Shown one piece after another: positions 1-34,830 of a stretch of DNA of 45,805 nucleotides. The notes under the pieces were generated by a model that was not told the DNA's origin, searched no databases, and saw only the letters and a program-made list of their open reading frames with translations. The stretch lies in NCBI GenBank assembly GCA_002269645.1, contig NIVC01004443.1:1-45805 (forward strand). Reading direction: 5' to 3'. Each line of letters begins with the position of its first letter. Position 1 is the first letter of the stretch. The DNA is from Macrostomum lignano (lineage: Eukaryota). A program made the translations under genes and the position numbers.

Positions 1-67
1 CAAAAAGTTAAACTTTATTGGTGAATCAAATTTCAAAGTGGAATTTCCAAGCAGAGTCATGACTTAC

Positions 68-1602
68 TTCTCAGGTGCTGCAGACAAGCTCCTTGGTTGG
101 TTCAAACTGGGACAGCTCTTCCTTCCAGCTGATGCCCCGGTGGACCTCGGCTGCCGCTACTCAGCAGCACCTCTGACGCAGCTTCCAGACGGCCGAACTT
201 GATGCAAAGACAGAGCTCGCAGAGTCCTCTCGGCTTTTGCTGCGCAGTCAGGCAGGCGCGCAATGACATCATCTAAGACAGATCTACAGTCGGAGCTTGT
301 GTCGTCTTCGTCTAGCATAACAAGTGCTTCTTTCACGTTGTCATAAATACTGAGATACTGAATTTCCAAAGCAAATTTTTCAATAGAAGCTTCAATTAGT
401 GGCTTGGGTTTCTTTTCCAGCGTTGGTACAGTAGAAATGGATGAAAACTGAAATTTTCAGAATCAGGAATGCTGGCAAGAACCATCGTTGAACTCTGCCA
501 GTATGTACGGCAGTTGTGAATCAACTCAATTAGGCATTGAGGCAATTTTCATCGCTGTGTCCCGACTTTTGTCCTTGCAAGTACAAGGCAGCATCACTCA
601 GAAAGAAAGTGCCTCATGATTTGTCCATCGAATGTCTTCGAATTGCAACTCTGCTCAACGTAGTTTAGCATCATCTGCAAGGCATGTCGAGTGAGAACTG
701 AATAGATTCTCCGGTCTCACACTGATCAGCCGGTGTCGCTTCAAGCATTCGGAACAGGAGAGTTTTGGCGTGATATGTTTTCAAGCCCGGCACACAGTTG
801 CTTATAACTCGTTTAAACAGATATTTGATAATAACGAACAGCTGACCTTGCAGTGTCGTGAGATTTTGCATCAGCTTCCTCTCTAAAAAGGCTGTGCTCA
901 CGCGGAACTGCGAGCCAGCAGATCCTGGAGATGCGGCACGTACCAAATGACAGGGCGATGAGGTGATCTCTTGCCGGAGCAAGTCCAGCACCCTCTGTGA
1001 TATGTTGGAGTCATTTTGAGACTGCAACACTGCCATTGGTGGATGCAGCACAGACTGAGGGCGGTCTCCAGGTGAATCGCTGGCCCCAAAGATTTGTTGC
1101 CAGGTTCGACATGTTTTGTAGAACAATTTGACGCTAAAAATGAGATAAAACCGTCAACTTTGGGCTTTAACAGAGATTAAAGTTATAAAGCAACAGTATA
1201 GACTAGAAGGTTTACTTAAGAACGTTGCAATTCCACTTACCAAAATCATCGCAGGTAATTTCACGCGTTGCAGTATTCAACAGTTTTTTTAACGCTAGCT
1301 GGATCAGGATGCCTGCAGCGGCAATAGTTCTTCAAGTGAAACAGTTGGTTTGTGTCAATCATCAAATAGTCGATGTCGGAGTCTGGATCGATGTCGCCAT
1401 TTAACGAGGCCATGCAGCTGCCCCAGCCTTCAGCAAAGCTGCCATAACAAATATTTTATTCTCTTTATCACACCGACTGCGCGCAGAGACCAGCTGCTGC
1501 AGAACCTCGGCAGCCGCAGTCTGCAGTGCCGCCCTGGGCCTGGTGAAGCCAGCACGGAGCATTGACTGGTGCACCAGCAGACTCTGCTCACTTGCTGTTG
1601 AC
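68..1602 (-). pseudogene. Mab-21/cGAS-like receptor (cGLR) nucleotidyltransferase domain, exons 2-3 of the ankyrin gene; about 8 frameshifts (pseudogene or assembly errors)
   Basis: Manual translation across frames gives YGSFAEGWGSCMASLNGDIDPDSDIDYLM (1360-1446; GS..EG...SDxD motif), FRVSTAFLERKLMQ...FVIIKYLFK...GLKTYHAKTLLFRMLE (ORF 671-1126; Mab-21 C-lobe motifs), then PENL, IMRHFF and FHPFL. Intron 1134-1240 (GTAAGT...TTTTTAG, phase 1) is frame-consistent. A further GTAAGT donor at 67 suggests the gene continues left of the window. Confidence 0.8.
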
Positions 1603-2053
1603 CTGATCAAGGATGGAAAGTTTATCGTCAGTTATTTTATTTTTACTGGAGGGAAGTTGCAGCCGTGAGAAGGTACCTATTCGCTGACCCCTGAGCACCC
1701 CATTTTGCCTCTCCGGTGTCGAGAATGCGGAGCATTTCATCTGTGAATGCCCCTAGAATTTACTCAGGACGAGCTGACACCTAGCTACTTCGGCCCAAAC
1801 TTGAGAATCTCTGCCAGCTCATCCGCAACCAAAGGGCTACCGGGCGAGCAACTATTCACCTCCTGGACTCTCTGGAGGGAGATTGCGCTATGGATATTGG
1901 CACCACCGGATCTCCCTGCGAGACACCGCAGCACCAGCTGCCCGTGGTCGCCAGGGGTTAGTGTAATGGAATGCTAGGAACCCCCTGCGAAATCCTCCGC
2001 ATTCTGGTGCAAGCATCTCAACGAAATATACTACTGGACCCACTCGGACTTAC

Positions 2054-3838
2054 GCCGGAAAATAATTATCAACCGAGAGTTTCATGGTCGAACGGTAACT
2101 TGTCAACCTATCTAGAACCTTCCTGTGGCCATTGAGTGCGGAAATCAACATCGGCGTTATTCCGTCGTGAGCCTTCAACTCGGGGACGGCTCCGGCAGCC
2201 AGTAGCAGATCCACCGTGTTTGTGTGGCCCTCTCGCGAAGCAGCGAGCAGCGCCGAGCAGCCGGTTGAGTCTGTGAGATTCACGTCGATCTGAGGAACGC
2301 TCAACAAAATTTTTACCGAAGCCGCGTGACCAGCTTGTGACGCCAGGTGCAGAGCTGTGCACCCGCTGCTTAGCCGAAGGTTCACGTCGGCCAGGGCGAC
2401 TTTAGCGAGCAGTTGGACAATTCGATGGTGGCCCAACTGACTGGCGATGTGAATCGGTGCCGCGCCTTCCGGATGCGACGTGGCATCCGCATCCGCGTTC
2501 ACTTCAACCAGAGCACGCGCAATCTTCCAGTGGTTCTCCTGCGCCGCTGTGTACAGAGCTGTTGTGCCCAGCTCGCCAATTTGATTAACGTCAACTTGAG
2601 CTTTAATGAGGCTGAGTACTATTGGCAGCTGGTTGCAATGTACGGCTACGTGAAGCGCTGGCTGAATTACGGAAATACCACAGTCCAAATTTGGATTTGC
2701 TCCGAGTTTTAGCAAACTGTCCACTATAGACCGATCGCCCAGGAAGAATGCACCATAGAGCGGTGTGCAGAGGTGTGCCGTTTCTGGTTGGACAGCTGCC
2801 TTCGCCTTGATGAGTTCCTGCACACACCAACTTGCGTCCATTTTGTACCGCAGCGTACAAAGGAGTGCTGCCGTTCAGCATGGCCTGATCGATGTCCGCC
2901 ATGGCTTGGACCAGTGCCTTCACTATCTCAACATGGCCCTCCTGCGATGCGATGTACATTGGCGTAGCACCGCTGAACTCGGCAAGATTGACGTCAGGAA
3001 CTCCGAGCTCCAACAAGCAGCGAACAATCTGACGGTGGCCGAATTGCGTCGCGATGAGCAACGGAGTTGCACCATCAACTTGCTGAATATTGACGTCTGC
3101 GGCTGCCCGACTGAGCACCTCGACAACCTCCGCGTGGCCTTCCTGTGCAGCTGCGTAGATGGCAGTCCTGCCTCGCTCCTGTTGCAGGTCGAGGGTTGTT
3201 TGAGCTTTGAGCAGCGCAGCCACCACTTGCCGATGACCATTCTGAGCAGCGATGTACATTGGCGAGCAGCCGTCAGTTTTCTGCGCGTCAACATCGGCCA
3301 TAGCTGAGACCAGCTGGGTGACAATTTCCCTGTGTCCGTTCTGAGCGGCCATGTAGAGCGGCGTGGACCGGACGTCTGTTCTGGACTGATTCACGTTGGC
3401 CTGAGCCTCGATGAGCAGCTGTACAACAGCGCGGTGCCCGTTCTGAGCAGCGACCCAGAGCGGCGTGCAGCCGAGTTTCTGAGGCAGATCGACGTTTGCA
3501 CCCTGCAGAATCAAGCTGCTGACCAACCTGTCGTGACCATAGGCAGAGGCCACAAAAAGTGGAGATTCTCCGTGACTCGATTGACGATTGACGTTCACTT
3601 CTGGCTGCTTTGAGGACCGGGTGAGCAGCTGAGCGGCCTGGTAGTTGCCGGTGATGCAGGCCAGATGTAGCGGCGACAGGCAGCTGCCGTTAAAATTGAA
3701 CATCTGATCAGGAGACTGACCACCGGTCAGATGCGCCCTCAGCTTGTCGGGGTCCGCCTGAAGCACCGACTGCAAGAAGTCCTCATTGGGAGTGTCGGCT
3801 ACTCGCGTTAAGTGCGAAATTTGCGTCCACTGACTCAT
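2054..3838 (-). CDS. Ankyrin-repeat exon (about 16 repeats) with one +1 frameshift near 2826; exon 1 of a putative ANK-cGLR fusion gene
   Basis: ORFs 2603-3838 and 2050-2841 join at GRKLV/VQELIK by removing one base. Serial G-x-T/S-P-L-x-x-A-A-x-x-G-H motifs. The apparent TAA at 2050-2052 lies inside a GTAAGT donor (2053-2048). Confidence 0.9.
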
Positions 3839-5690
3839 GCTTAAAGTCCTGGACTGAATCAGCAGCCTATATAATTGGTCTTTTCTGAAAAGAAAGGTCG
3901 CTTCTTCGAGTGACCAACAGTTAAAAAACTAGATTTTAAAGCTCTGATTCCATTCAGAAATTCAACCGCAATTTCTGTGAAAAATTTAAAAGAAATTTAA
4001 ATTCAAATTTGCGAGCTAAGATCCTTTCAATCCAATCCTTTAAAAATGTTTAAAATAGGTTTTCGACTTAAGCAATTCTTTATTATGTCTTATTGCTAAA
4101 AATATAGGTGAAACAGCGAAATTTATGTACATTAATTAACACCATAATATTATTAAAATAAGTTTAATTGAATGAGTTTCTGACTCGAAAAGTGGCTAAA
4201 GACAACATATAATAAAGAAATAAATATTTAATTAAATAATAGTAATTAATTTAATTAAAAAGTAGTTGATATTATTAAATAAATATAACTAGATGTAGAC
4301 TTATTTTGTTTCAGTAGTAAAATTCTTTTTGTTATGTTGTCTAACGTTTGAAAGCTGCAGTAAAGAATCGGTTTACGTGAGTATCAGAAAATATAATCTT
4401 CGCAATTCATGGACCACTATAGCAGATATTCGAATAAGTAAAATATCCTTCCACTTTTTATTTTATTTAACGGCTCATCATGAAAGCTAAATAACTAAAA
4501 AATTGTTCATAACGGAATTAAAACAAGAGAGTAGCTGCTGTTAAAGCAAAAATTTATTTTAGTTCCTTGTCAGTGGTAATATTCACTTTTGCAGTCATGC
4601 TTTGCGCACTTATTTCGCTGAAAAAGTTCGAGTTAAATATACACTATTACTTGATAAAAAGATTCTTTCGTAACAAAAAGAAATTATTGTGATTGCTTAT
4701 GTTAGCTTTTTCACAGAAATGTTTTGTACAACCCTTAAATTTCGTTTTGCAATGCTTTAAATCTTCTTTTTTGTTATACTACTGTTAATTATAACACCAA
4801 AATAAGCCGCAAATATGCTGTAGAACCCAATAAACAATATTATTTGAACTTTTAGAAGAAGTAAGCTGAGCTAGTTTCAAGAAACCTCTTCTTGTATTAT
4901 ATTGCAAGTCTGATGAAAATACGAGCGGAAATTAAAGCACATCCGAATGTAATTCACTTTAAGGTGCTAATACATGTTGGATATGTTAGACGAATAACGT
5001 GTAAAAGAGACGAAAAATTAAAAGTCGAGTTCGTTAAAACTATTTTTCTAAATATGCTACTGTACTAAACGTACGTAGATACGAGAAAAATGTACATGCA
5101 TTCTTAGTGTACATGCACATGTATACCCATGCAGCAATCTGATATGGCCACAATGTCGGCCAACGCGGTTTTCGACGTCTATCGACGAGTGAGTGGCAAA
5201 TGAGTACTTTTACAGTACAGCGATGGTTCAGTAGACGACCTTACATGTATGACGTTACGTACGTTATCTAATGTAAATGTAATGTAATGTACGTATTTGT
5301 CAGCGACGTTGATAATACTTGTCTACAGACGTCGGACTGCGGTACCAGCATGGTACATATGTATATATGCATGCAATATATAAGATGCGAAAGTATAATT
5401 CGCATTTCCCCCAATGAAAGAAAAGTTTGATTTTGGGTGGAGCCGCTATATAGCTAAAGGATCTTGCATGGGGAGACGAGATTTCTTGACGAGAGTTTAT
5501 TTTGTGATCGAGCTTCGGCCCGATATCGTGGTGAGGACTGCGCACGGGTTTGAGAAGAGAGAAAACTGTTTCTGAAGCACTTGGGGGGAGCTCATGGAGG
5601 GTCGAGAATTGGGACGGCAGTGAGCGTGCCGGCGAAATTGCTTTCACTTTGAAGAGTTGCCGCGTGCGTGCAGGCCGGCCTCGAGTTTGT

Positions 5691-5856
<166 letters not shown>

Positions 5857-6592
5857 CACAGAGCTGGGAAAAGGGGTCCAGATCGACCTCGTCGCGCTCT
5901 CTATCCTAAGCAAAGCTCTCGGCCGCGGGCTTGGGAGAAAAACAGGGAGCTGGGTAAGAGAGGAGGGAGAGAGAGCCGAGAGTAAGGGGCGATTGAGGTG
6001 AGGATAGATTTTCTAAGCTCAAGGCCTGCCAGCTAAAAGTACTGCTTTCCCGCAGTTGATTGGCCTGGGGGCAGTGACGATCAGGTCGGGACGGGGATGG
6101 ATGCAGCGGACGAGAGGGAAGGCCGGAGACGTGGAGGTCTTGGCTGAGGGGCTGAGGGGGGATTTTGGACTTGGGGGAGGGATAAACGAGGGTAGACGGT
6201 GCAGGAGCGAGTCAGTTGGGCTTTGGGGGGAGGGACTGCTTTGCTAACAGGGGGACAGCTGAAGGAGAGAGAAATTTAAGGGACAGGGAGGTGGACGGAG
6301 AACCCCAACTGAACCTATAGGTTCGTGTCCGCCTCCCTCTCTCGGACATTTCCCCTCCTTTCCTCCTCCTTCTTCTTCTGCGCGCCCGGCCTCTGCCAAC
6401 CTATACATAAGCCCTTTTCTTAAGTTAACCAAGCCAAGAAAAGTTTTCTTTTCCTCAATTCTTTCTCCTGGCAACTTTGTAGGCCGACCGACTGGCGAGG
6501 TAAGGCTTAGCGCCTCTGTGATCACATTCACTTGTTCGCATCTTGAATTAATATTAAAGCAGCTGTTGATTCCGTCAGCTTTTTTAGACAAG

Positions 6593-8250
6593 ATGGCCAG
6601 CGCCACTCAGGCACCAGAAGTCATGATGAGCGTCAACGGCGGAGCCAGCAGCAGAGACGAACCGTCCATCACCCTGTCGCGATACTCTGAATACGGCCTG
6701 CTGATCTGCATTGGAATTGTCGGCATCATCGGCAACTTCGGCATTGCACTGGTCATTCTGTTCGTCCGCCGTCTGCGAAAGGCCGCAACGCCTTCATGTT
6801 CCACCACTGCCTGCTGGACCTGCTGAAGTCGCTCTACTGCCTGATCTTTGCCAACAGCCTGCTGCACGACCAGGAGCCGATGTTCTGCAACCTTCTTGGC
6901 GGCTCCTTCATCGTGTGCGTGACCAGCACGGCCTTCAACATCCTGGCCATGGTCATGAGCGAGGCTTACGTCTTTGCCGACCTTAGCGCTGGGGTGAAGG
7001 ACAGCGGCAACTACTGCTGCATCCTGTTCAGCATCAGCACCATCTGGTTCGCCAGCATCATTCTCAACTTGGGCGTCGCCTTCCTGCCTGGCAATCCGAG
7101 CTACATCCAGAAAGTCGGTCACTGCACTTTTAGCTACGGCGAGACCCGGAACTACGTGCTCCACGTGCTGTGGATCATCCTGGTGACGTTCGCCATGAGC
7201 CTGGCCATCATGTACTTGAAGAAGCTTCGCCAGGACATCAAATCCAACTCGACCAGCGGAGTTCTGCAATCGGATCTGCTGCGCATCATCCGCCAGTCCA
7301 TCGCCGGCCCGTCCGACCTCAGCCCGTCCGGCCACCCGCAGCTGCAGCATCAGATGATGGCCGATCAGTGCGTCGACGACGTGGCAGAGAGGGCCCTGTT
7401 GAAGAAAGTGGAGCGATTCGCCATGACCAAACTGTACACCCTGCTGCTCATGACGGCTCTGTTCGTGCTGTTCTGGTATCCGCTGTTCATCCTCACCCTG
7501 GTCGATCCGAACTTCCACGGACAGCCGGTGGCCTACAAGGCCCTGACAATCTTCGCCTGCTGCAACGCCGCCGTCAACCCGTTCGTGTTCATCTGCCTGA
7601 TCAGCAAGCGTGGCTGCTGTCGCACGGAGATGCCGCGCCTCCGGCTGGCCAAGGGCAACAGGGAGCTCTTTCAGGAGCCCGGCGGCATCGCTACCCTCAA
7701 CCGGTACGGCCGCGGCAGCCGCTCAAAGAAGAACATCCTGCAGGCAGAGATGCAGTCGCCGCCACCACCACCTCCGCCGCCGCCGCCTGTGCACCAGCCG
7801 GTGGCGACTCTGATGCAGAGCGGCTCGTTCGACGACTCCAGAGGCCGGGCCAGCTTCCGGCATCAGCACTCGTCCTCTTCGCTGCGACAGTCGCACCATC
7901 AGCAGCAGCAGCACCCGCAGCACTCGCTGATCTCTGACGCAGCCGATCATCCCGGCATCTACAACGAGTACTTCGCCATGCACCCGCTGCCGCCGCCGCC
8001 TCCGCACTCGGTGCCGCCGCCGCCGCCGCCCCCGGCCGCCTACCTGCACCGCATGGAGTCCTTCGAGCGGTCGCAGTCACCGCCGCCTCCGCCGATGCCA
8101 CCGCCGCCTCCGCCACCGGGGATGGCGGGAGCCACGTCGTCAACTGCAACCGCAAGTCCGCGGAGACACATGCAGCAGCAGCAGCAGCAGCAGCAGAGGT
8201 CGCAGAGGAACCTGTGGACACCGCCGTCTGGTGCGCAGTCCACATTGTAG
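6593..8250 (+). CDS. Orphan rhodopsin-family (class A) GPCR, possibly SREB/GPR85-like; one 1-bp deletion at about 6778-6780
   Basis: ATG at 6593 follows a TTTTTAG acceptor. TM1 ends in GIIGN. Restoring one A in the cgAAA run joins RLRKGRNAFMFHHCLLD to ORF 6796-8250. Seven hydrophobic segments, an ECL1/TM3 cysteine, FWYP in TM6, NAAVNPFVF in TM7, and a long Pro/Gln/His-rich tail. The subfamily call is from recalled resemblance only. Confidence 0.85.
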
Positions 8251-9951
8251 AATTGCAAGACTCAGCAGCAAGGCCCATGCAGTCATATAAATAGGATGAG
8301 CAGGCATATATTAAACAGGACAAAGAACAACAAATAGTTTCCAATTTAGGTTCGTAGCATGCTTATTAGTGTTGCCTAAACTGTCACAACATTTATGGAA
8401 ACAAGAAAGACATGAAAAAATAGTTTCTATCCCATATCCATAATATAGACAAAGTAGGTTGAGGCCCCAGCGAGTTGTTGGGCAGATATTTTATTTTAAC
8501 AATAAAATCGAAGTTATCAACATATTCACGCACTTTTTTTCTGCGTACATTGTTCATTAACTACTCTCGCTTACAGTCTCTGAAGCCTGTGTTTGTTGTA
8601 AGTTAGAAGCTCTTTAGTCAATAAAATGCACTTCATTTTGCACACTATATAATTATATACTTTGTTTTAATCAAAGGTCAAACAATCCGTATACTGTTTT
8701 AATTTTGAAATTTTAGCACGTTGATTTTAACAAATATTTCTCTTTCTCAGAAAGTAAGCGTAATATTTAAAAGTAACTTTGAAATTCTATTTCATATTTG
8801 AAACTAACAATAATGAATAGTTTGCTTATATACAAAAGTTTGTAAACGATTTTCAATGCACCGTTTTTACAATATTTTAGTGTGGAATTTAAGCACTATG
8901 TAATTATGAAACATGATGTGCTGTATATTCTCCAATAACGAAAAATTTATTTACTGCACATATTCGAATATTACATCAAAATTTCATACATTTTACATGT
9001 TATACATTGTAGGTATATCATTCACTTGGCAAAATAAATTATGATTATAGCTTCAGACGAATCAAAATGAATCACGCTGACAAATATTACTCACTGTATC
9101 TTTGTTATAAGTAGCTATCGTTTCGTTTTAATTTAATTAATTTCGTAATTTTGTTTTCGTTTTAATTAAATAGCCAATAAGGTAAAAGCTACGTTTCTAG
9201 CTAGTATAGTTTTTTGGTAGTCAAATCTAACTAAAATATTTTTTGTTGTGAACTGTAATAACTGTGAACCTGTTGCAAAACAGTTTAAAAGTACACCCAG
9301 TTCTTAACAGTGCATGTACATCGCAGAAGTACATGTTGCGTAAAAAGTGACATCCTTTTCAGCAAATAAACTTTACATTTCTCAAAGTTGCAGCACATTT
9401 TCCAAGAACCATTTTGATCATTATTGATTTTTTGTTATAAATTCGCATTTTTTATGGTCACAATTCGAATGAGCATTTGGACTGGGTGAGTCATGTATAT
9501 TTCTACTTTACATGCATGTACCTGACGTCTACATAATTTCCTAGCAAACTTCTCTGCAAACTTGCATGAAAATGTACAGTGTAAAATACAATATATGACT
9601 CGATTTTCGGCACTGCAACTTCAACACACACTGGAGACATTGGGAAGTGAGATTGAGAGGGAGGCCTCCTACTCGTAAAGAACTGAGACCGCCTCAGGCC
9701 CGACTTGTGAAGGAAAAACTCGGCAATTAACACTTACAGAAGCTGCTCCCCTGGGGCTTTGAGGACTCGCGGATCGCGATGAGGCTGCTGGCACGCACGC
9801 GCCCCAGCCGATCTTATAGATTTCTCGCGACGGGGATGCTGGCTCGACTTCTGCGGGAAGCTCGGACTGCTGGCTGTTTTAATTAAAATTCCGCGAGCGC
9901 TGCTTCTGCCAGTGCTCCGAACTTTTTTCCACGATTGAGCAACCCTGATTT

Positions 9952-11845: not shown

Positions 11846-12753
11846 AAGATTACAATAGACTGCTTGCGCAAAATAACTAAATCGTTGGCAAGATCATAAT
11901 TCATTGAAGAAGCAATTAACGTTCTGAAGCGAGAGTAGCGCAATCTTAATAGTAATAACTATAAGATTTATTAAATTAGTATTATAAAGTTTGCTACTGG
12001 CTGCTGCACAAGAGCAAGACCTCCCGCAGTGTCGGGGAGAAGCATCATGCAGCTATCATGCATATTTTTATTTATATAAAATATATTCGTAAATTAGCAA
12101 TAACACCGAACATTGCTACTCTTTTTTGGTATATTATCAACAATCGTACCAACCAGGGCAGTACATACCGGTACTTCAGTACAATTAATTAGTCAAAATA
12201 CTATTTTACTTTTTCAGCAATAAACACGCGCATATCCTACTTACAGCATCAGTAGTAGCAGTAGTTACATCTGACCTAGTGAACTTTAAAGATTATATAA
12301 ATATATGGCAATAATTCCAAAATTTAACTAATAATATTTTTATTAATAATTGTAGACATTGCAAAAAATTACACCAAAGCTACTACTATTACTATCATAT
12401 GATTTATAGGCATATTTTATATGGATAAAGCAATTAACAGTTTCAGTGGAAGCAGCAAAACAGGGCATGGGCAGACGCCAGGAAGGCAGGAACAGCCTAT
12501 AAGAAATTGTTGACATTTATTTACCAACACAGAAGTTTATAATTAATAATAATATTAATAATAACAATAAGTCATTTAAAGCATTTGTCAAGCAAAGTCA
12601 GCACAACGCCCCCGCCCCAGCGCATTGGACACGCCAAGGAGATTAATAAATATAAATAAATAAACAAATTCGGGTTGCGGGCTGCGTTCAAATGCGCAGC
12701 TGCTACATGTAGGAGAGGATTTTGAATGGACATTGAGTGCTGAGGGTAGCATT

Positions 12754-13878
12754 GGGAGGGGAGAGGAACAGGGGAGAGGGGAAGAGAGGAAGAAAGGGGA
12801 AGAGAGGAAGAGAGGTAAGAGAGGAAGAGAGGGAAGAGAGGAAGAGAGGTAAGAGAGGGGAAGAGGGGAAGAGAGGGAAAGAGACGGACGAGAGGGGAAG
12901 AGGGGAAGAGAGGGGAAGAGAGGGACGAGAGAGGAAGAGGGGAAGAGAGGGGAAGAGAGGGACGAGAGGGGAAGAGGGGAAGAGAGGGGATGAGGGGAAG
13001 AGAGGGGAAGAGGGGAAGAGAGGGACGAGAGGGGAAGAGGGGAAGAGAGGGGAAGAGAGGGGAAGAGAGGGGAAGAGGGGAAGAGAGGGGAAGAGAGGGA
13101 CGAGAGGGGAAGAGGGGAAGAGAGGGGAAGAGAGGGACGAGAGGGGAAGAGGGGAAGAGAGGGGAAGAGAGGGACGAGAGGGGAAGAGGGGAAGAGAGGG
13201 GAAGAGGGGAAGAGAAGGGAAGAGAGGGGAAGAGAGGGGAAGAGGGGAAGAGAGGGGAAGAGAGGGACGAGAGGGGAAGAGGGGAAGAGAGGGGAAGAGA
13301 GGGACGAGAGGGGAAGAGGGGAAGAGAGGGGAAGAGAGGGACGAGAGGGGAAGAGGGGAAGAGAGGGGAAGAGAGGGAAGAGACGTGAAAGGGGAAGAGA
13401 GGGGAAGAGGGGAAGATAGGGGAAGAGACGTGAAAGGGGAAGAGAGGGGAGAGGGAAGATAAGGGAAGATAGGGGAAGAGAGGGAAGATAGGGGAAGAGA
13501 GGGAAGAGAGGAAGAAAGGGGAAGAGAGGCGAAAGGGGAAGAGAGGGGAGAGGGAAGATAAGGGAAGATAGGGGAAGAGAGGGAAGATAGGGGAAGAGAG
13601 GGGAAGAGAGGGAAGATAGGGGAAGAGAGGGAAGAGAGGAAGAAAGGGGAAGAGAGGCGAAAGGGGAAGAGAGGGGAGAGGGAAGATAAGGGAAGATAGG
13701 GGAAGAGAGGGAAGATAGGGGAAGAGAGGGGAAGAGAGGAAGAAAGGGGAAGAGAGGTGAAAGGGGAAGAGAGGGGAGAGGGAAGATAAGGGAAGATAGG
13801 GGAAGAGAGGGGAAGAGAGGGGAAGAGAGGGGAAGGGAGGGAAGAAAGGGGAAGAGAGGGAAAGAGAGGGGAAGAGAG
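12754..13878. repeat. About 1.1-kb polypurine/polypyrimidine low-complexity tract (AGAGGGGA / AGGGGA / AGGGAAGAT units)
   Basis: The plus strand is almost only A and G. Confidence 0.95.
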
Positions 13879-14589
13879 ACGGATTAAAGACGATGATAGA
13901 CAGACAGGCAAACAGACAGCAAAGTAAAGAATTTTGCAGCTTTTGCACTAAAAAGGCAATTAAACTGGGAACACAGGTCATACTAGAATAATTAATAACA
14001 GGGGATAATCACAGAAACGCATGTTTTTCTTGTCTATCTAACGTTGCACGCAGCACAAAATCAAGTCAATCAGTTCTTACACAGTAAAAACTGACGACTC
14101 AAAATATTGACAAACGATTTAGCAGTTGCGCATAAATGACAAGCGAAATATTTCGAGTAAATAGACAGGCCTGAGTCCTGGACTCACGAAAACAGGACTC
14201 GAATATTATATTTCGAATATTATCTAGAACATTTTCGATATAAAATCCATATAATCCTTAGGTTGAAAAGTTTACTTGTAATGTGTGAAACTAATACCCC
14301 TATAATCCAGGCCACTATGGGATTAATGTCCTTAGTTTAGACGAACATTCGAGGAAAGCCACACACAACACATTATATTTATATAAGCTTGAATAGAAGT
14401 TATTATATTAATTAAAAAAATAGATTACACGGGCATAATAGGAAAGCAGAGCGACCTACTGTAGCTTGATAAATTGATCATAATTTGCCAGTCGGGAGTA
14501 ATATATAATAGTCATATGCATACAGTACTACTGACTGGCTGAACTTTGTTTTAACAAATTTACAGATTTCTGAGCGACAAAGAGGATCT

Positions 14590-15135
14590 GGACTTTGACC
14601 CCCGATGAACAACTGGGATAAGGGGGACTTTGACCCCCCGATGAACAACTGGGGTAAGGGGGACTTTGACCCCCCGATGAACAACTGGGATAAGGGGGAC
14701 TTTGACCCCCTGATGAAGAACTGGGGTAAGGGGGACTTTGACCCCCCGATGAACAACTGGGATAAGGGGATTTTGACCCCCCGATGAAGAACTGGGGTAA
14801 GGGGGACTTTGACCCCCCGATGAACAACTGGGATAATGGGGATTTTGACCCCCCATTGAAGGACTGGGTAAGGGGGATTTAGACCCCCCATTGAAGGACT
14901 GGGGCAAGGGGGACTTTGACCCCCCGATGAAGAACTGGGGTAAGGGGGCTTTGACCCCCCATTGAAGGACTGGGGCAAGGGGGACTTTGACCCCCCGATG
15001 AAGAACTGGGGTAAGGGGGGCTTTGATTCCCGATGAATTACTGGGGCAAGGGGGGCTTTGACCCCGGATGAAGGACTGAGGTAAGGGGACTTTGAACCCT
15101 CGATAGACAAGGGTAAGGGGGACTTTGACCCCTCC
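14590..15135. repeat. 37-bp minisatellite (gggggactttgaccccccgatgaacaactgggataag), about 15 copies, each with a G5/C5 hairpin
   Basis: Direct tandem periodicity. Confidence 0.95.
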
Positions 15136-15467: not shown

Positions 15468-17823
15468 TCAGCGACATTCCCAAACCTTCACAGTTTGATC
15501 AACGCAGCCGCTGACCAAATATGGCGATTTCTTGTGAAAGTCAATTGTAGTAACAAAATGCGAGTGCGCGTCTAACGTTTTCGTATTCCTTTTGTTCGCC
15601 AGGTCCCACACTCGGATGGTTTTGTCGTCCGAGCACGAGACAAGGTACTTGCCGCCTGGGTGGAACAGCACCGCCCGGACCCAGTTGTCGTGGCCAACCA
15701 GGGTGAACAGGCACAGCTGGGCGCTCGTGTCCCAGAACTTGATCACCCGGTCTCTGCGGGGCGAACCGGGTGTCAGAAGGTTGAAGTTCTGAGAAATTCT
15801 CCTTTGAACCTCAAATTGGCTCAAATTAAATTGGGAAATACCCCTGAGACAGACTCACTCCAAAGTACACTGAAAAATACCCCCTGAGACAGACTCACTC
15901 CAGTGCACACTGAGAAATACCCCTGAGACAGATTTACTCCAGAGCACACTGAGAAATACCCCTAAGACAGATTAACTCTAAAGTACACTGAAAAATACCC
16001 CCTGAGACAGACTCACTCCAGTGCACACTGAGAAATACCCCTGAGACAGATTTACTCCAGAGCACACTGAGAAATACCCCTAAGACAGATTAACTCTAAA
16101 GTACACTGAAAAATACCCCCTGAGACAGACTCCAGAGCACACTGAGAAATACCCCTGAGACAGACTCACTTTAAAGCACACTGAGAAATACCCCTGAGAC
16201 AGACTCACTTTAAAGCACACTGAGAAATACCCCTGAGACAGACTCACTCCAAAGCACACTGAGAAATACCTCTGAGACAGACTCTGCAAAGTACACTGAA
16301 AAATACCCCTGAGATAGACTCCAGAGCACACTGAGACAACCTGAACCTCAGCGAGAAATGCGGGCTACTCCACAATGCAGCCAGTGAGTTACCTGCCAGC
16401 GCTAACTAGGTAGGGCCCAGGCCTCTTGTTAGCATCACCGCCAGCAGCCTGACAGACGGCCTCCTTGGCATTGTCAGGCGCCCAGGCTACGGCCTCAACA
16501 ACATTCTCGTGTTCGCGCAGGTCCGCTTTGCACTCCTTGGTTGCTACAAGCCACACGCGGACTGAGTGATCGTTTGAGCACGAGGCGATTAAAGTGCCGT
16601 CTGGAGACACTCGAACCATCCGGACCCACTGCTGGTGTCCGGCTAGGGTCTTCACGCAGTAGCCGGTGGACACCTCCCACACCTGCAAGTGAAGCATTTG
16701 TTGGAATACACATTAAAATATATACTGTTACAGCTACTGAGCTCTGCAATATGAAAATCTGAAAATATGTAATGATCTGCGCAATGAAGAACTGAAACTG
16801 AAGGCCTGAAGCTACACATTCACTCAAACCTGAAGGCCTGAAGCTACACATTCACTCGAGCCTGAAGGCCTGAAGCTACACATTCACTCGAATCTGAAGA
16901 CCTGAAGCTACAGACTCACTCGAACGTCTCGAATCTGAAGGCCTGAAGCTACACATTCACTCGAACCTGAAGCTACACATTCACTCAAACCTGAAGGCCT
17001 GAAGCCATAGACTCACTCGAACCTGAAGGCCTGAAGCTACACATTCACTCGATCCTGAAGCTACACATTCACTCAAATCTGAAGGCCTGAAGCCATAGAC
17101 TCACTCGAACCTGAAGGCCTGAAGCTAGAAATTCACTCGAACCTGAAGGCCTAAAGCTACACATTCACTGAAACTCACCTTAATCAGCTGATCTCTCCCG
17201 GCAGACACCAGGAAATCCCCAGACGGTGTGAAATGCACCGAGGACACGTTGTGATCGTGACCAGACAGTGTCTTCAAGCACTCGTAAGTAGTGAAATCCC
17301 ACAATTTGACTTGCAGATCGTGAGAACAAGAGGCCAAAAGTTTGCCTGAAGCATCGAAAGCCAAGTCTTGCACAGAGTTAGTGTGGCCCTTCATCGTGCG
17401 CTCAAATTCGCCAGATTCATAATCCCACACCTTGATAGTGGCATCCTCACTGGCTGAGACCATCTGAGCATAGATCGGGTGGAATTTCACGCAGGTGACT
17501 GGGCCCCGGTGACCCGGGAACTCATACTTCGCCGGCGGCCTCGGGATCCACTCAGTAGGGGATCGTTTATCCCTCGATGGCGCACCAACGTTAATTTCGC
17601 TCTCAGCCTCCGATAATTTCTTTTCTAAATCGTGCACCTTCTTTTGCAAACGAATCACTGATGTCCATTTCTTTTGCAGCAGGTCCTCATACTTTTTGTC
17701 AATTTCGCCTTGCAGCTCGGATTCTTCTTTGAACTGTTCAAATGTTTTTGTATAGCCCTGCGATTTCAGGTAATCGGCTATGGCTTTGTTCAGTTCTTCT
17801 CTCTGTCGTTGAGACAAAACCAT
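15468..17823 (-). CDS. LIS1: LIS1 (lissencephaly-1 / PAFAH1B1 homolog), LisH + coiled coil + 7 WD40 dynein regulator, 406 aa; exons 17823-17179, 16682-16393, 15753-15468
   Basis: [19 protein letters not shown]...[13 protein letters not shown]...EWIPRPP...GHDNWVR...[10 protein letters not shown] matches known LIS1. The two GT-AG introns (phase 0 and phase 2) give a continuous 1221-nt ORF. Confidence 0.97.
15835..16336. repeat. 39-bp minisatellite in LIS1 intron 2 (gagaaatacccctgagacagactcactccagagcacact), about 13 copies
   Basis: Direct periodicity, including a duplicated 3-unit block. Confidence 0.93.
16798..17172. repeat. 32/24-bp minisatellite in LIS1 intron 1 (ctgaaggcctgaagctacacattcactcgaac), about 12 copies
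   Basis: Direct periodicity; runs up to the exon-1 donor site. Confidence 0.93.
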
Positions 17824-18539
17824 GGTGACTTGGAGATGAATTGTGAGGTGAGAGCTGGCATGCATAAAGTTGATGATAGTCAGTACATTGATCACACTGG
17901 AGCCTTTTTGTCATTGCATTATAAATGCCCAGTGCATATCTGTTTGTTCATGACATTCAAACACAGGATTCGACACTTACATAGGCTACTCCTAAAAAAT
18001 TAACCAAAACAAAAACTAAAATTTGTTCTAAAAATTTTCTCAGGATTTATTATATCTAGTTAATAGTTACAAACTCTAAGTTTTGAGATACAAAAATTTT
18101 TAAATAAAAGTTCATGTTTTAATTCAGTTCATAATCAGTATATCAGTATACTTTACTTATAGATCTATTGTTGATGCTGAAACAAACAGAACTTAATTTA
18201 ACTAGTAGTGTTTCATCATAATTAAGAAGTACAAAGGCAATAAAAAGTCCTGTCACTTTAACATTAACATTTATTTTTGCTATAAACAGCAAAAATAAAT
18301 GTTTATAATATTGTCATATGAGAAAATGACATTAATGTAAAAAATTCCAGGCTCTGTTGTAACATACAAGAAGTTTTAAGTGTCTATGGCCATTCTTTCT
18401 CCTCATTTGTCAATTTAGGACCATAGACATATAGGCATAGGTATTTATGGGCCTAGATTCACTGTAAAAGGAAAAATAATGTCAGGATAAATTTTAATTT
18501 GTTAGCATGGTCTTACCACACTTCAAAAAAGATCAATCA

Positions 18540-27214: not shown

Positions 27215-27398
27215 TGTAGTGTGCGTACGCACGGTATGTAAGCCCAACGTGTACGCCCGGGCGGTCTGATTGGCTGCAGAGCGGGGTGGGTGCCGCCACC
27301 CCAATTCTAGCTCTAAATATATAGATGTGTGCCCAGCGCGGCGAGAGTGTCAGAGTTTCGGCTACACAGCAAACACGGCTTCTGTCTCAGGTACTACA
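27215..27398 (+). repeat. 5' LTR (184 bp) of the Gypsy element
   Basis: Begins TGTAGT and ends ACTACA (perfect 6-bp inverted termini), has an internal TATATA, and is followed 1 nt later by a PBS. Confidence 0.8.
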
Positions 27399-27399
27399 A

Positions 27400-27411
27400 T
27401 GGCGTCGCAAG
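27400..27411 (+). promoter_or_regulatory. Primer-binding site (TGGCGTCGCAAG), probably tRNA-Ser type
   Basis: TGG complementary to the tRNA CCA end immediately after the LTR. The tRNA identity is inferred from the TGGCG start. Confidence 0.65.
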
Positions 27412-30400
27412 CGAACCCTTAAAATCATGACTCAGCAATTCTCACTCGCGCCACCCGGCTCGTTTACAATCGATAGAGATTGCAACTCCATTGCACAGCG
27501 CTGGACTGCATGGACTCGTCGCTTCGCCATTTGGATGGAAAGAATAACATTGTGTTCCTGCGTTTCAAGTTTCAGACCTGCAGACAGCAGCCTGGCGAGC
27601 CGATCGACCAGTGGTATCAGCGTCTGCACAAGGCGGTGGAGCCGTGCGAGTTCGGATCCCTCAGAGACTCACTGATCCGAGACAAAATCGTCGCCTACTG
27701 CGAGTCCGAGAGACTTAGGAGAGACTTCTTGCAGACCAACAGCATCTCCCTGGCAGATGTGCTCAAAAAGGCGAGGGCGAAAGAAACCGCGGAGCAGCAG
27801 GCCACCGCAATGGAGAGCGACAGACCAGGAGAACCACAGCAGCTCGCATCAGTCAGAAGAGACCGGCAGCCGCCAAGACCGCAGGCACCGACGCAGCGCG
27901 TATCCTGCGATCGCTGCGGCAGATCGGGGCACCCCACGTGCACCGCAGCGCAGGGCAAGAGCTGCAGAAAGTGCGGGAAGCCGGGCCACTTCGCGCGAGC
28001 TTGCAGGTCCAAGCAGGGCGCCCCGCAGAGCGGCGCCAACGCCGTGAGGTCGACCAGGGTGAGCTGTCGGCCCACACAGTAGCCGAGATCAACGGTTCCA
28101 GACTGTCGGTGTTAATCGACAGCGGCGCGGCTCGAAATGTGATCAAACGGGCCATGTTCGAGAGCCTGAGACAGCGACCGCACCTGCAGACCACCTCGGA
28201 CAGGCTGTTCGCGTACGGGTCGGACCGGCCGATGCAGCTGCTGGGCAAGGCGGCGATGACCGTCCACATTTTCGGCCGGCAGGCAGTCGCCACGTTCGAC
28301 GTCGTCGAAGGGAGAGGCATCACCATCATCGGCAGGCAGACGGCCACTTAGATGGACATCCTGCGTGTCGGACCACCACCTAATGCCGGCCAGCAGGTGC
28401 TGCAGGTCGCTGAAGTGGAGGCGGTGGTCGACGGCCTCCTTAGCGGCACGATATCCAGCGGAGTGCCTCAAAAACACGTCGAGGACATCGGCAGGGTGCT
28501 GGCATGCCAGCGTGTTCAGCGGCATCGGCTGCTTCACTGGACCGCCTGCCGACATCCACCTCACCGACAGCGCACGCCCGGTCTGCAATGGGCCTTCGAA
28601 GGTGCCGATCCATCTGGCAGACGTGGTGAACAAGGAACTGCAGCTACTGGAGCAGCTCGGGATCATTGAGCCCGTCGACGGTCCAGCGCCGTGGGTTGCG
28701 CGGATGGTCGTCGTGCTCAAGAAGGAGCCGAGCGAGGTGCGCATCACGCAGGACCTCCGCGATGTCAACCGCTTCGTCATCCGCGAGCGGCACCAGATTC
28801 TCGAGGAGTTGACCGGGGACATGGCCGGCAGCACTGTGTTCGATCTGAGCTGGACATCGCGAAGGCGTTCTACCAGGTGCCTGTGGCAGAGAAATGCCGC
28901 AACCTGCTGACATTGTCAACGCCTCGCGGACTTCGCCGTCTCACCCGGCTGTGCATGGGCCTGTCCACCTCCCAGGAGATCCTGCAGAATGTGATGAGTC
29001 GAGTGCTGGCAGGCCTGCCCAACGTAAAATGGATCCACAACGACGTGGTCGTGTTCGGCCGCACGATGGCGGAGCACAACAGCAGCCTCGAGGCATGTCT
29101 GGCCCGCCTGGCGCAGCACGGCATCACGCTGAACGCTCGGAAGTGCCGACTGGCGCGCAGCAGCATCGAGTTCATGGGAATGCGGCTCACGGCGGAAGGA
29201 GTCCAGGCCACCGAAAGCAAGGTCGCCGCCGTTCAAGACTTCAAGGAGGCGGGAAGATTGGACACCTTCGCTCATTCCTAGGGCTCGTGAACTACTCGTA
29301 CCTCGCCGTGTTCACGCCACAGCTAGCCAAGGTGGCGGAACCGCTGCGGCGTCTGACCAGGAAGGGTGTCAACTGGCAGTGGGGCGCCGACCAGGCCAGC
29401 GCCTTTGAGCAGCTGAAGCGCAGCATCGCGGAGCCGACAACGCTGGCTTTCTACGATAAGCAGCTGCGCATGCAGCTGATCGTGGACGCGGGGCCGACCG
29501 GATTGGGCGCCATCCTGGCGCAGGTGCAGCGCGACGGCAGCTCGAGGCCGGTTGCATACGCCAGCCGAACCCTATCCGACGTCGAGCGGCGATACTCGCA
29601 AACCGATAAGGAGGCACTGGTCGTCGAGGAGGCCTGAACTTTGAGTACTACCTGCATGGATCGCCCGAGTTCACAGTGGTCTCCGATCACAAGCCGCTGG
29701 CTGCCATGTTCGCGGCTGCCTCCACGAGTCGAGCGAATGGCGCTGAGGATCCAGCACCTAGTGTTCAAGGTCGAGTACCAGCCGGGAGCCTCCAATGCTG
29801 CAGACGTACTCTGCAGGCAGCCCGGAAGCTTTGGCGAGCATCAATGGAGGCCTACATCAACGAGGTGGCGCAGGCGGCTGTCCCGTTGGCGTTGACGTTC
29901 CAGGACATCCGCAAGAGCTCTGCCAGCGACCTAGTCATCCGGGCGGCGAAAGCGGCGACGCAAGGCGGCCGGTGGGATCGCTCCAATTCCGAGGTACGCT
30001 CGCTCCATGTGCTGCGGGAGGAGCTGTCTGCTCGGGGTCCTCCCTCGGCACCAGCGAATCGGCCGAAAACTAAATTTAGAAATTTAAAGTTTTAAATTTT
30101 ATGTCTATTTAAAAGTTTTGGATACAAATTTAAATTTTAAGTGTAAAATAAACTTTCATTTCGATTAATATTTATAGTCGGTTTTTTTATTTTACACTTT
30201 CGATTATCAATATTTGTCCAAAATCGTTAAAGTCAACTCCGTAAAGCCGCAGATTCCAATTATGGTTTTGCCTGTTAGGCAGATGTAACAAGTCCGTTAT
30301 ATTTACTTAGCGAAGGTGGCTAGCGTATAGTACTATAGGAGTAGTATATAGTATGCGCATTTCAGGTCTGGACGATTTACCAGTAGCTAAAAAGAAATGT

Positions 30401-31112: not shown

Positions 31113-32141
31113 TCAAGGCTGCTGCTGAAGCAGCAGCCGCACCGCCTCTTCAGTCACAGCCGAGTTGGCCACGGCGACGGCACGGATGACGCCATTCAAT
31201 ATGAACTTGCCTGGATTCCGCCAGCCGATCTTGATGCAGGCGCCAGCATTGTTATATTTAAATTTGGAACCGTTGCCAGAGTTCAGGGGCTCAGTTAAAA
31301 AGGCGGATCCCAGCAGAAATCGGCGTTCACCTGACGGCTTATCGGTTGTCAAGCCAGCGGTGAAGAAGCGCTCAGGGTCGGCGGGCAGCACAGAGCAGGT
31401 TTGGACCCAGTTTTTGTCGCCAATATTGGAATACAGACATCGCGTCTTTCCTGCAACAAGGCTGTATTCACAAAAGTGGCTTGAGTATGAGCTCATGTCT
31501 TCTAATGATCCGCAGTTGTCCAGCTCGATGAAGCACTGTTTCTTGGGAGTTCTCTTCAGGTGCAGCAACCAGGTGTAGGACGCCGTGAAGTCCAGACCTG
31601 TGGGGTCGTCCACCCACAGCCGAGACGAGACTCCGTCCATGCGAGCGCCCTCACTCGTCCAGGTCACATTGAGCGACTTCATGGGGTTCCTCTGTCCCTC
31701 GGAGCCGCACACCAGGTTCTCCAGCGCCGGTCCCCTGTCTCCGACCCACACAGCGCTGAAGTGCTCGTTCGCAGCGATCGCGTCGTACTCCGAGTCCACC
31801 ACGGTCTCGCAGGTGCTCTCAGCGGCCACTCCCGCAGTCGGTGTCGTCCAGTTGATCAAGCTCAAGTTGAGCAGGCGGCACACCTCACCGAAGCGGAACA
31901 GCGCGCACGAGGCGTCTCGCTTGTTCCGCTGCACCACGCCGACGCTGCCGAGACGGAACGACCGACTCGACACGAAGCAGTCGAGCAGGGAGGCGGAGGC
32001 TCGCGACAGCTGCCACACAGACAGCGACAAGTTCAGGCAGTCATTGTTGGCTACTCTGTGCTGTGTAGTTTTGTCTCCGTTCACACAGTCAGAGACCGAG
32101 AGCAGGGCGCACAGAACAGCGAGATGTAGGAGGCTGGACAT
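31113..32141 (-). CDS. Single-exon secreted protein: signal peptide, Cys-containing PAN/apple-like region, C-terminal laminin-G/ConA (pentraxin-like) domain
   Basis: Start at 32141 (AAAATG context; an alternative ATG lies at 32153). MSSLLHLAVLCALLSVSDC is a signal-like sequence. LDFTASYTWLLHLK and IKIGWR...LNGVIRAVAVANSAVTEEAV match LamG_3-type patterns. Confidence 0.75.
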   Translation of the reverse strand: MSSLLHLAVLCALLSVSDCVNGDKTTQHRVANNDCLNLSLSVWQLSRASASLLDCFVSSRSFRLGSVGVVQRNKRDASCALFRFGEVCRLLNLSLINWTTPTAGVAAESTCETVVDSEYDAIAANEHFSAVWVGDRGPALENLVCGSEGQRNPMKSLNVTWTSEGARMDGVSSRLWVDDPTGLDFTASYTWLLHLKRTPKKQCFIELDNCGSLEDMSSYSSHFCEYSLVAGKTRCLYSNIGDKNWVQTCSVLPADPERFFTAGLTTDKPSGERRFLLGSAFLTEPLNSGNGSKFKYNNAGACIKIGWRNPGKFILNGVIRAVAVANSAVTEEAVRLLLQQQP

Positions 32142-34830
32142 TTTGCGGCGCATTGCAAGCTTCAGTGAGTCAGTAGGAGAGAATTCTGCCAGTATGGAGA
32201 GACTCGGCATCGGATTTTATGGCAGTTTTGAGCTTTTGGCTGATCAGTGAAGGCGTTTTAATTGCCCAAGACAGCGCATAGGCTGCATGCAGCAAGTATT
32301 ACTTGGCAAACGAAGTCATTGCCAATCAGCCATGCAGAAGAAGAGACGGAGGGACAGCACGAAGTCGCAATGCGCGCTAAATCCGAACGACTTTAAGCAG
32401 ATCCATTAACCGGAAGCGAGACTATCTATAGGAGTTGCGAAAAAGATAATTTAGACCAAGAGATTGTTTCATCACGTCCAAATATAGGTGATGCTTTATA
32501 GCGAGTATTTATTCGCAGCTTTTCAGCAAGTCTACTTGCTGAGCGAGTTAGTTCCCATTTCCTGACTGTATGCAAATAAACAAAAACCATTCGTATAACA
32601 AATGCAGTTACCGGTCCATTCGTTTCATTTTAAAATGGTATATTTTTATCGCTTTTAGGCCAAATTATGCGACTCAAAGCGCATTGAAACAGTTCAATAT
32701 GAAGGCAGCAAGATATTCGCCGAAAAGTTTGCTTTAATGAAAAATTCATTCAATCATTCAAAGATACAAACCTTGATTGGAAAATAAAGAATTAAGAAAA
32801 AAATTAAAAAAAAATGAAAAAAAATTAAGAAATGATTGGAGATTATCAAGGGTCCTTTATTTGACCACAATAAACAAAGCGCAATAAGTGTACACAGAGC
32901 TTTATGAAAATTTTCCAAAGTATAAACTTTTTAAAAAATCAGTAACACTGCTAAAGTTACTGCAATAGAAAGCAGGAATGTAATTGTTGTAGGGGTGTTA
33001 TTGATAGCTTAGTCCCGCCGCTTAGCTACCAAATTTGTTACAGGGGGGGGGGCGTCGGGGGTTTCTTGGGGGTTTGGGGAGAGGTATTCAAGTATTACTA
33101 CTAGAAGGCTTTAAAGTTACTCCTGGCGGCGTGAGTGTCCGAGCGGCAAGACACTATATTTCTACTCTGTCCGGGTATCTAGAGGGGGGGAAGGGGAATA
33201 AGGGCTTCGCGATGGATCAGAGTTGCCTGGGAAACTGGCGCGCTACAGGGGAATTTCAATGGCTAATGGGGAATGATTGCATGGAGGGTAGGATTCTTAA
33301 TAGGGAATTGAATAGCAGACGGGGCGCCTAATAGTTGGTGGGGATTAGATAGACAGAGGTCTGAGGGATAAGAAGGCGGGATGCCTGATAGGAAGGTTTG
33401 GGAATTGGCAAAGGCCTGCGCAGACAGCGATTCTGGATAGGGAATTGGCAAATCGCCAGGTTAGAATAGTAGTCTGGGGAAGATCAGTATGATTACTCAA
33501 TTGGGAAGAGACTGTACACTCAGTTAGGGAGGGGAAGGCGAAAAGGCTGTACGCTTATAGCGGAACAAAAAGGGCCTTCTCAGGGAAGAGGGGAGAGGCT
33601 GTACAATCAGAACTGAACAAGACCTCTTTGGGGAAGGGAAAAAGGCGAGGGCGCCTTCAAAGGAATGACACAGAGTCTGATCTATTTTTAGAACAACTGT
33701 TCATGCGGCCGAAAGGCAAAGGCCAAATAGAAGCTTAGGCGGCAACAGAATCCGATATATTTGCTCGTATATATACGCTATTTAATAAAAATGGCGGACA
33801 CTTTTTAACAAAACCTTGAAAATAGTAAACACTATGAGCATATTTGAGACAGTAAATGATATTTACGCTACTTTTTATGATCAAATAGATAGGAGTAATT
33901 TGCTAATAAAGGAATATATATTTTTCATAACGCATTTAACGAGTAATATACATAAGGTAAGCAATTATTACTATATCATGTGACGGGTTTGTTTTACCCG
34001 GTGTGCTAAAAATATTATTCAACAAAAACTTTGACGCCGATGCTAGAAATAGTAACTTGCATAATTTTTATTCGTTAGACTCTTATTTTTATGCCAATAT
34101 GCTAAGAAAAATAGGTTTTGTTATACTTTTGTTATAAATTCATTTTATATTTGTTGTGAATCGTTTATACCTTTTGCCAGTGTGGTGCGTGCTTGGCCTG
34201 CGCTCTCTGCAAAATAGCTGCTATTGGCCATTTAAATTATCGTCAAATAAACCGCCCTTGTTAAACAATAACTTTATAGCCCTCCTGTCGAGACGCTGCT
34301 TTAATCGTGTTACTAATGAAGTTTACTTTGATCGCCTTTAGGTTATCAAATTGAATTTACATTGAAATCTGACGAAAAGCATATTAGCATAGGATATAAC
34401 CGGTGATTGACAGCAGTGCACGTGTGGTTCGTCTGCAGTCGAGCTCGTCTACAAGCACGTCACAATCACTATATCATAATTAAAAGATTCAATAATAAGA
34501 AAATAATAGAATACTACGGTATAGTTTTAGGCTTTGAATTCCACACTTACTTTGCTAGAATATTTTAGTATATCATTCCAATTTTGAAGACACTTGCCAC
34601 ATTTTCAAACTGCTTTGCTTTAAAAGTTGACACGCTAGTTTCTGTTTTCGTAGCCACCTGAATTTAAGAACCAAGAAAATATTGCTGTAAGAGTACTTAC
34701 TATCTACTGTACTGCAATACTACTTAATGGTTAATGCAAAGACTGTCTTCAGAATATTTGTCGCATTGAGGGAAAACTGTTTTTTAAATTGATAGTTACT
34801 GACATACTGTCATAAATTACTTTACCGTCT

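Follow-up and report, generated by a model that had tools for sequence, protein, structure and literature searches.

The start of contig NIVC01004443.1 of the flatworm Macrostomum lignano (assembly GCA_002269645.1) raises the question whether a long ankyrin array and a set of nucleotidyltransferase-like fragments downstream of it form a single gene, and whether the frameshifts that break this gene are real. The stretch analysed here, hereafter the window, covers positions 1 to 45,805 of the contig. A first-pass annotation made from the sequence letters had proposed a hidden gene at 68-3838 on the minus strand, in which about 16 ankyrin repeats would be joined across an intron to a module of the kind found in cGAS and Mab-21 proteins, and so to the cGAS-like receptors (cGLRs). 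The reading that probably accounts for the locus as a whole is that the window holds a third copy of the gene Mlig008770, which encodes a three-exon protein of about 1126 amino acids with an ankyrin array and a cGAS/Mab-21 module, and that the indels disrupting this copy are consensus errors.

Gene structure and identity of the locus

The ankyrin array of about 16 repeats and the cGAS/Mab-21-fold module belong to one gene, joined through the predicted intron, and homeolog gene models, protein profiles and the modelled fold agree on this. A majority consensus of the window and the two Mlig008770 loci g2 and g3, built from a three-way alignment, contains an intact open reading frame (ORF) of 1126 amino acids in three exons (Table 1). 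Donor, acceptor, phase and minus-strand coordinates of intron 1 are all as the first-pass annotation had predicted. The last base of exon 1 is C2054, followed by the donor GTAAGT at 2053-2048, and the apparent stop codon TAA (2052-2050) lies inside this donor. The acceptor ...ccttgatcAG has its AG at 1604-1603, after a pyrimidine-rich tract. The split codon GC|G encodes alanine and is completed by G1602, from where the frame reads STASEQSLLVHQSMLRAGF. The proposed gene end at 68 did not hold, as the coding sequence runs past the window start and the final 35 codons and the stop codon of exon 3 lie beyond base 1.

The intron 1 junction recurs in three M. lignano database proteins, namely PAA92866.1 (Mlig008770g3, 833 amino acids), PAA85095.1 (Mlig008770g2, 960 amino acids) and the UniProt model A0A1I8FUG1. 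All three read …DNYFPA|STASEQSLL… across intron 1, and the junction sequence ...DNYFPASTASEQSLL... is found in the RNA-seq-derived PAA85095.1 and PAA92866.1 as well as in the independent model A0A1I8FUG1. The GenBank protein models of M. lignano come from a genome-guided RNA-seq transcriptome (PMC5730564). The junction reads that the first-pass annotation had called for are thus in effect provided by the homeologs, whose RNA-seq-based models span the junction, and not by the window copy itself. The intron 2 junction ...CDDF|ASNC... is likewise present in the homeolog proteins. In the three-way alignment, intron 1 of copy g2 carries indels of 1, 4 and 18 nt, which fits non-coding DNA. The possibility that the GC-rich 451-nt intron 1 represents decayed coding sequence was rejected on the basis of the 4- and 18-nt indels and because the homeolog transcript models splice it out.

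The same organization is shared by other members of the family. The paralog Mlig021960, 45% identical, is laid out alike: the ankyrin repeats and the N-lobe each have an exon of their own, the rest follows, and both introns lie at the same positions. At least eight paralogs have the ankyrin repeats and the nucleotidyltransferase in this order. An alternative reading would separate the locus into a gene with ankyrin repeats only, which would stop at the TAA at 2050, and an unrelated Mab-21 remnant behind it. As assembled, the ankyrin frame does meet the TAA at 2052-2050 and no long ORF follows downstream. However, in three independent models of homeologs or paralogs the two parts are connected precisely at intron 1, and the order of the two parts is shared among the paralogs, which makes two separate genes highly implausible.

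Sixteen ankyrin repeats were counted in exon 1 of the three-copy consensus protein. Tandem 33-residue repeats were confirmed in the window itself, where Pfam Ank_2 matches the two ankyrin pieces with E 6e-66 and 2.5e-53. As assembled on the minus strand, the ankyrin frame opens at ATG 3838, shifts once at about 2824 and then reaches the TAA at 2052-2050. The first-pass description of an ankyrin ORF running into the donor was thus correct in placing the TAA within GTAAGT, but the ORF itself is frameshifted, and 19 more corrections are needed downstream. Beyond 1602, coding-like sequence is spread over all three frames and includes YGSFAEGWG…SDIDYLM, GPAIHLE, FRVSTAFLERKL and LKTYHAKTLLF. The GS and SDID motifs and the Mab-21-type motifs FRVSTAFLERKL and LKTYHAKTLLF are thereby located downstream of the junction, as had been claimed. 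A frame switch read as …HPGILIQLALKK… was considered and rejected, as the homeologs show the frame continuing as …HPDPASVKKTVEYCNGEITCDDF. The gene was missed in the window because this copy is full of 1-nt indels and is truncated by the window edge. It is not hidden in the sense of the first-pass annotation, since its homeologs are annotated in GenBank.

The window copy is 98.0% identical to the g3 locus of Mlig008770 and 98.2% identical to the g2 locus in coding and non-coding DNA. Both loci, found in the same assembly, align with the window over 6-9 kb, introns and intergenic DNA included. Because identity of about 98% extends across coding, intron and intergenic DNA, the nucleotide alignments identify the window locus as a third copy, either a homeolog or an allele, of Mlig008770. 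The first of the two G-protein-coupled receptor (GPCR) genes in the window (6796-8250) also adjoins the gene in the g2 locus. M. lignano is a recent polyploid, and in its assembly Mlig_3_7 the non-repetitive blocks that are duplicated with at least 95% identity add up to 180 Mb (PMC5730564).

Mlig008770 is so far on record just as a hypothetical protein. An exact-sequence protein look-up with four window ORFs returned no record, and a rough frame-corrected translation gave no match in a word-indexed homolog search at E <= 1e-3 and none in a phmmer search against the Protein Data Bank (PDB). An exhaustive HMMER scan with the same translation recovered 114 relatives, the best 89% identical over 312 amino acids and the next 75%. 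According to cluster look-ups, all close relatives checked are from M. lignano, and relatives beyond flatworms, from a sea anemone, a tubeworm and a mussel, are weak. The relatives of cGLRs have undergone a large expansion in M. lignano, of which this gene is a part, and many of them have ankyrin arrays fused.

Frame-breaking indels in the window copy

Compared with g2 and g3, the window copy carries 20 private coding indels and eight private substitutions. All but one of the indels fall within bases 1-1450, with 17 in exon 3, and they become denser toward base 1. The substitutions, in contrast to the indels, are distributed evenly over the gene (Mann-Whitney p = 1.2e-4). The rate of private indels is about 13 per kb over bases 1-1450 and about 1 per kb over 1451-8900. 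Most of them are gains or losses of a single base in short homopolymers. Genes elsewhere in the window are intact, including a 1344-aa ORF. Judging from this distribution, errors in the long-read consensus near a contig end are the most likely source of the indels, ahead of biological decay. The Mlig_3_7 assembly was produced from PacBio reads with Canu and polished with short reads by Pilon (PMC5730564), and such polishing would be expected to work poorly amid near-identical duplicated blocks. The indel pattern fits either a poor long-read consensus at a contig end or near-identical copies that short-read polishing left unresolved.

The competing view is that the window copy, and perhaps g3 as well, is a genuine decaying pseudogene, a redundant copy that lost its function after the recent genome duplication and whose frameshifts are real. 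Two observations count against consensus error as a complete account and in favor of decay. First, each copy has at least one private frameshift: besides the 20 in the window copy, g3 has five, at positions equivalent to window 3767, 3318, 3064, 2920 and 2818, and g2 has one, at the equivalent of 3641. These private 1-nt indels explain why the deposited g3 and g2 proteins start at internal methionines. Second, private substitutions number 26 non-synonymous to 16 synonymous, a ratio that is uninformative at such counts but suggests relaxed constraint, so that one, several or all of the copies may truly be decaying. The duplicated genome would offer the redundancy for such a loss, and a conserved aspartate of the nucleotidyltransferase module (Asp147, see below) is replaced by histidine. 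Against decay, a ratio of 20 indels to eight substitutions is far off natural mutation spectra, and the indels cluster in 1.45 kb at the window edge where the substitutions do not. No frameshift is common to the copies, and their consensus is intact. The homeologs are also transcribed, given that their GenBank models are based on RNA-seq. Genuine decay of the window copy is therefore an unlikely explanation, and consensus error remains the preferred one.

The cGAS/Mab-21-fold module and its catalytic residues

The module downstream of intron 1 is predicted to have the cGAS/Mab-21 nucleotidyltransferase fold. An AlphaFold2 model of the 537-aa homeolog module reached a predicted local distance difference test score (pLDDT) of 86.3 and a predicted template modelling score (pTM) of 0.89. 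In a Foldseek search of the PDB with this model, the best 50 matches listed are all cGAS, MB21D2, Cv-cGLR1 or MAB21L1, each with a probability of 1.00 and E between 6e-7 and 5e-5; their TM-scores, normalized by target length, are mostly about 0.5-0.6. A profile of 25 family modules compared with PDB sequences retrieved cGAS (E 2e-7), cGLR1 (8gjy, 5e-7) and MAB21L1 (7e-3). The Pfam family Mab-21_C (PF20266), whose cut-off is 24.1 bits, matches the module of the three-copy consensus with 24.7 bits. The g3 model scores 23.3 bits and two paralogs score 26.8 and 26.2 bits. The rough frame-corrected window translation reaches 15.4 bits, below the cut-off, and Pfam found nothing on the separate frame pieces of the Mab-21 part of the window.

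Several results weigh on the other side of this assignment. Mab-21_C clears its cut-off by a small margin. The Pfam nucleotidyltransferase domain of Mab-21 (PF03281) is unmatched in this gene and in nine relatives, even with E up to 10 for two of the modules, and an N-lobe-only profile found no match among PDB sequences. Of the profile matches anticipated by the first-pass annotation, Ank_2 is thus strong, Mab-21_C is marginal and seen with the three-copy consensus, and PF03281 is lacking. The fold shared with cGAS, Cv-cGLR1 and human MB21D2 (4k97, 8gjw, 7lt1) is the bilobal Mab-21 nucleotidyltransferase with its GS and [DE]x[DE] motifs, and C-lobe motifs of the WRLSFS/SYHxKT type are common to vertebrate cGAS, Cv-cGLR1, MB21D2 and Mlig008770. 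Sequence identity to these proteins is 11-16%, and they have neither the ankyrin array nor the long extension that Mlig008770 carries at its C-terminus. The N-lobe of Mlig008770 is rearranged, with one strand in place of the hairpin in cGAS, and the presumed third acidic residue is not conserved. MAB21L1 (5eog/5eom) shares the Mab-21 fold and appears among the Foldseek matches. Unlike Mlig008770, it is a single-domain developmental protein that lacks fused ankyrin repeats and does not belong to a lineage expansion. Synthesis of a nucleotide signal has not been demonstrated for MAB21L1 (PMC9980059), so the family may already include a member without enzymatic function.

The C-terminal extension spans about 190 amino acids (module residues ~350-537) and is conserved in the family, including the segments …FHPF…, …DSAWKF… and …NFDAL…. 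It was modelled with a pLDDT of 81 as a helical bundle with a small sheet. Compared with the PDB, the extension gave no significant sequence match, and the best hit of a fold search had E of about 1, to weakly similar TPR/Fis1-like helices. The extension is a family- or lineage-specific feature of the flatworm cGLR-like family. In two M. lignano UniProt models of the family, ankyrin repeats separate a pair of nucleotidyltransferase modules; these models could represent true tandem cGLRs or merged neighboring genes.

Fusions of ankyrin repeats to cGLRs, like the expansion of cGLRs in M. lignano, have been catalogued before (Li et al. 2023, PMC9980059). Across animals, 87% of cGLRs are single-domain proteins and some have TPR or ankyrin repeats (Li et al. 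2023, Fig. 1C, PMC9980059). The available part of Table S2 of that study contains the M. lignano proteins PAA67649.1 and PAA58690.1 with Ank_2, and the available part of Table S3 lists, as #89-93, the M. lignano proteins PAA86972.1, PAA45980.1, PAA57558.1, PAA93208.1 and PAA68676.1 (PMC9980059). The presence of Mlig008770 itself could not be confirmed from these parts of the tables. The M. lignano candidates found there share with Mlig008770 the motifs GFxxxRA..Q, VGS[FY]xEGWG, SDIDh, LRVSTxFLE, LKxYHAKT and FHPF as well as N-terminal ankyrin arrays. They differ in being other paralogs, about 30-45% identical, and most of them keep Asp147 where Mlig008770 has histidine. Beyond the supplementary tables of Li et al., a literature search found no relevant paper pairing Macrostomum with cGAS or STING. 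In the coral Stylophora pistillata, cGLRs are fused to ankyrin repeats and death domains, and the ankyrin repeats were proposed as a ligand or protein interaction module (Fig. 4C, PMC9980059). Mlig008770 shares with these the fusion of a cGLR core to ankyrin repeats. The coral proteins belong to another phylum, the flatworm-specific extension of about 190 amino acids is not evidenced there, and the coral has several STING receptors.

Catalytic competence is less secure than the fold. Residues G64/S65 and D86-I-D88 vary little or not at all across the family, and the window encodes both (1443-1438 and 1377-1369). An extended hhalign alignment of low confidence places GS on cGAS G212/S213 and DID on E225/D227. 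D147, within PAVDxVxA, is near-invariant (at least 90% of the family) and is the sole such acid on the next core strand, formed by model residues 145-154. All three copies of Mlig008770 have histidine at residue 147, within GPAIHLETAL (window His codon 1074-1072). Judging from its strand position and the hDhhxA pattern, D147 would be the third metal ligand, equivalent to cGAS D319. Two results weigh against this equivalence: the extended hhalign alignment, which is ambiguous here, pairs the family 'PAxD' with cGAS 'PAVT' on the preceding strand, also at low confidence, and the N-lobe-only profile has no match in the PDB. The default alignment to cGAS covers the C-lobe alone. The replacement of Asp147 by histidine in all three copies makes enzymatic activity of Mlig008770 doubtful.

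The residue bears directly on the suggestion that Mlig008770 is an active immune sensor, in which ankyrin repeats bind a ligand and the module makes a cyclic dinucleotide for a STING-type receptor. This suggestion draws on the cGAS-like fold found with AlphaFold2 and Foldseek, on the intact GS and DxD motifs and on the treatment of family members as cGLRs in the available parts of Li et al. 2023 (PMC9980059), who also note ankyrin fusions as likely ligand or protein interaction modules (PMC9980059). Glu149, on the same strand and two residues past His147, might replace the metal ligand. However, histidine takes the place of a near-invariant aspartate in all three copies, and the 140-enzyme screen of Li et al. 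includes five relatives from M. lignano, none of which has an active-enzyme label in the available part of Table S3 (PMC9980059). The species table of the same study, where seen, gives 0 cGLR and 0 STING for cestodes and has no M. lignano row (PMC9980059). A functional receptor making cyclic dinucleotides is thus unproven and, for this paralog, somewhat weakened as a proposal; we regard it as rather unlikely. By a narrow margin, we favor the view that Mlig008770 is a sensor or regulatory paralog without catalytic activity over that of an active synthase. By analogy with cGLRs, the ankyrin solenoid might control the Mab-21 part by recognizing a protein or ligand or by autoinhibition. GS, DxD and a third Asp are retained in most paralogs, which could make a nucleotide signal.

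A further proposal is that the flatworm clade forms a distinct offshoot of the cGLRs, marked by the ankyrin array, the rearranged N-lobe and the conserved extension of about 190 amino acids, with Mlig008770 catalytically dead and acting as a scaffold or in signalling other than through STING. We consider this quite unlikely as a complete account.

Neighboring features and implications

The window contains several features apart from the Mlig008770 copy (Table 1). The intact 1344-aa ORF might encode a TRP-like channel, judging by its repeats and hydrophobic stretches; Pfam found ankyrin repeats in it and nothing else. One of the two GPCR genes is of the rhodopsin family (7tm_1) with a long poly-Pro/poly-Gln tail, and the other encodes an Srsx-type chemoreceptor. 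The CT-rich repeats yield long spurious ORFs rich in Ser, Pro and Leu. Pfam scans of the 365-, 174- and 141-aa ORFs gave no match, and the loci at 41461-41985 and 42699-43457 may be transposon-derived.

Table 1. Positions of the exons, introns and private indels of the Mlig008770 copy and of other features in the window.
Feature	Position	Strand	Description
Exon 1	2054..3838	-	ATG at 3838, short N-terminal region, 16 ankyrin repeats; consensus in frame throughout
Intron 1	1603..2053	-	GTAAGT...AG, 451 nt; at the boundary between ankyrin array and nucleotidyltransferase module
Exon 2	1241..1602	-	Linker, long N-terminal helix, GS motif 1443-1438, SDID motif 1380-1369
Intron 2	1134..1240	-	GTAAGT...TTTTTAG, 107 nt
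Exon 3, incomplete	1..1133	-	GPAIHLETAL strand, Mab-21 C-lobe ~845-525, C-terminal extension ~525-1
Private indel sites	2824, 1444, 1265, 1045, 719, 697, 608, 570, 542, 517		
Private indel sites, rest	481, 429, 243, 227, 208, 157, 151, 82, 69, 37		4 nt at 69
Private T insertion	2824	-	In GGTGTGTG; shifts the ankyrin frame; absent from both homeologs, whose proteins read NGRKLVVQELIKAKAAV
Private indels of exon 2	1444, 1265		G deleted at 1444, C inserted at 1265
First GPCR gene	6796-8250	+	
Second GPCR gene	43942-44952	+	
(GA)n microsatellite and two CT-rich tandem-repeat blocks	5690-5860; 12500-14000; 14400-15100		The microsatellite is long
LIS1/PAFAH1B1-like gene exons	15468-15824 and 17125-17895	-	LisH_PAC1 and WD40 repeats
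Degenerate retroelement gag-pol	~27300-30100	+	zf-CCHC, RVT_1; several overlapping frames; GC ~63%
ORF	31113-32210	-	365 aa
Intact single-exon ORF	35418-39452	-	1344 aa; ankyrin repeats, then several C-terminal hydrophobic stretches, possibly transmembrane (by eye)
ORF	41461-41985	-	174 aa
ORFs	42699-43457	+	141 and 110 aa

A correct model of 1126 amino acids is now available for Mlig008770, for which the deposited g3 and g2 proteins are N-terminally truncated. Careful reading of the raw sequence can recover a multi-exon fusion gene that is split into many pieces. Apparent pseudogenes near contig ends of Mlig_3_7 should not be taken at face value. The change from Asp to His, the conserved extension and the downstream signalling partner in a flatworm may be of interest to the field of innate immunity. 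If the proposed cGLR offshoot is real, it would stand in a phylum otherwise reported to be without cGLRs.

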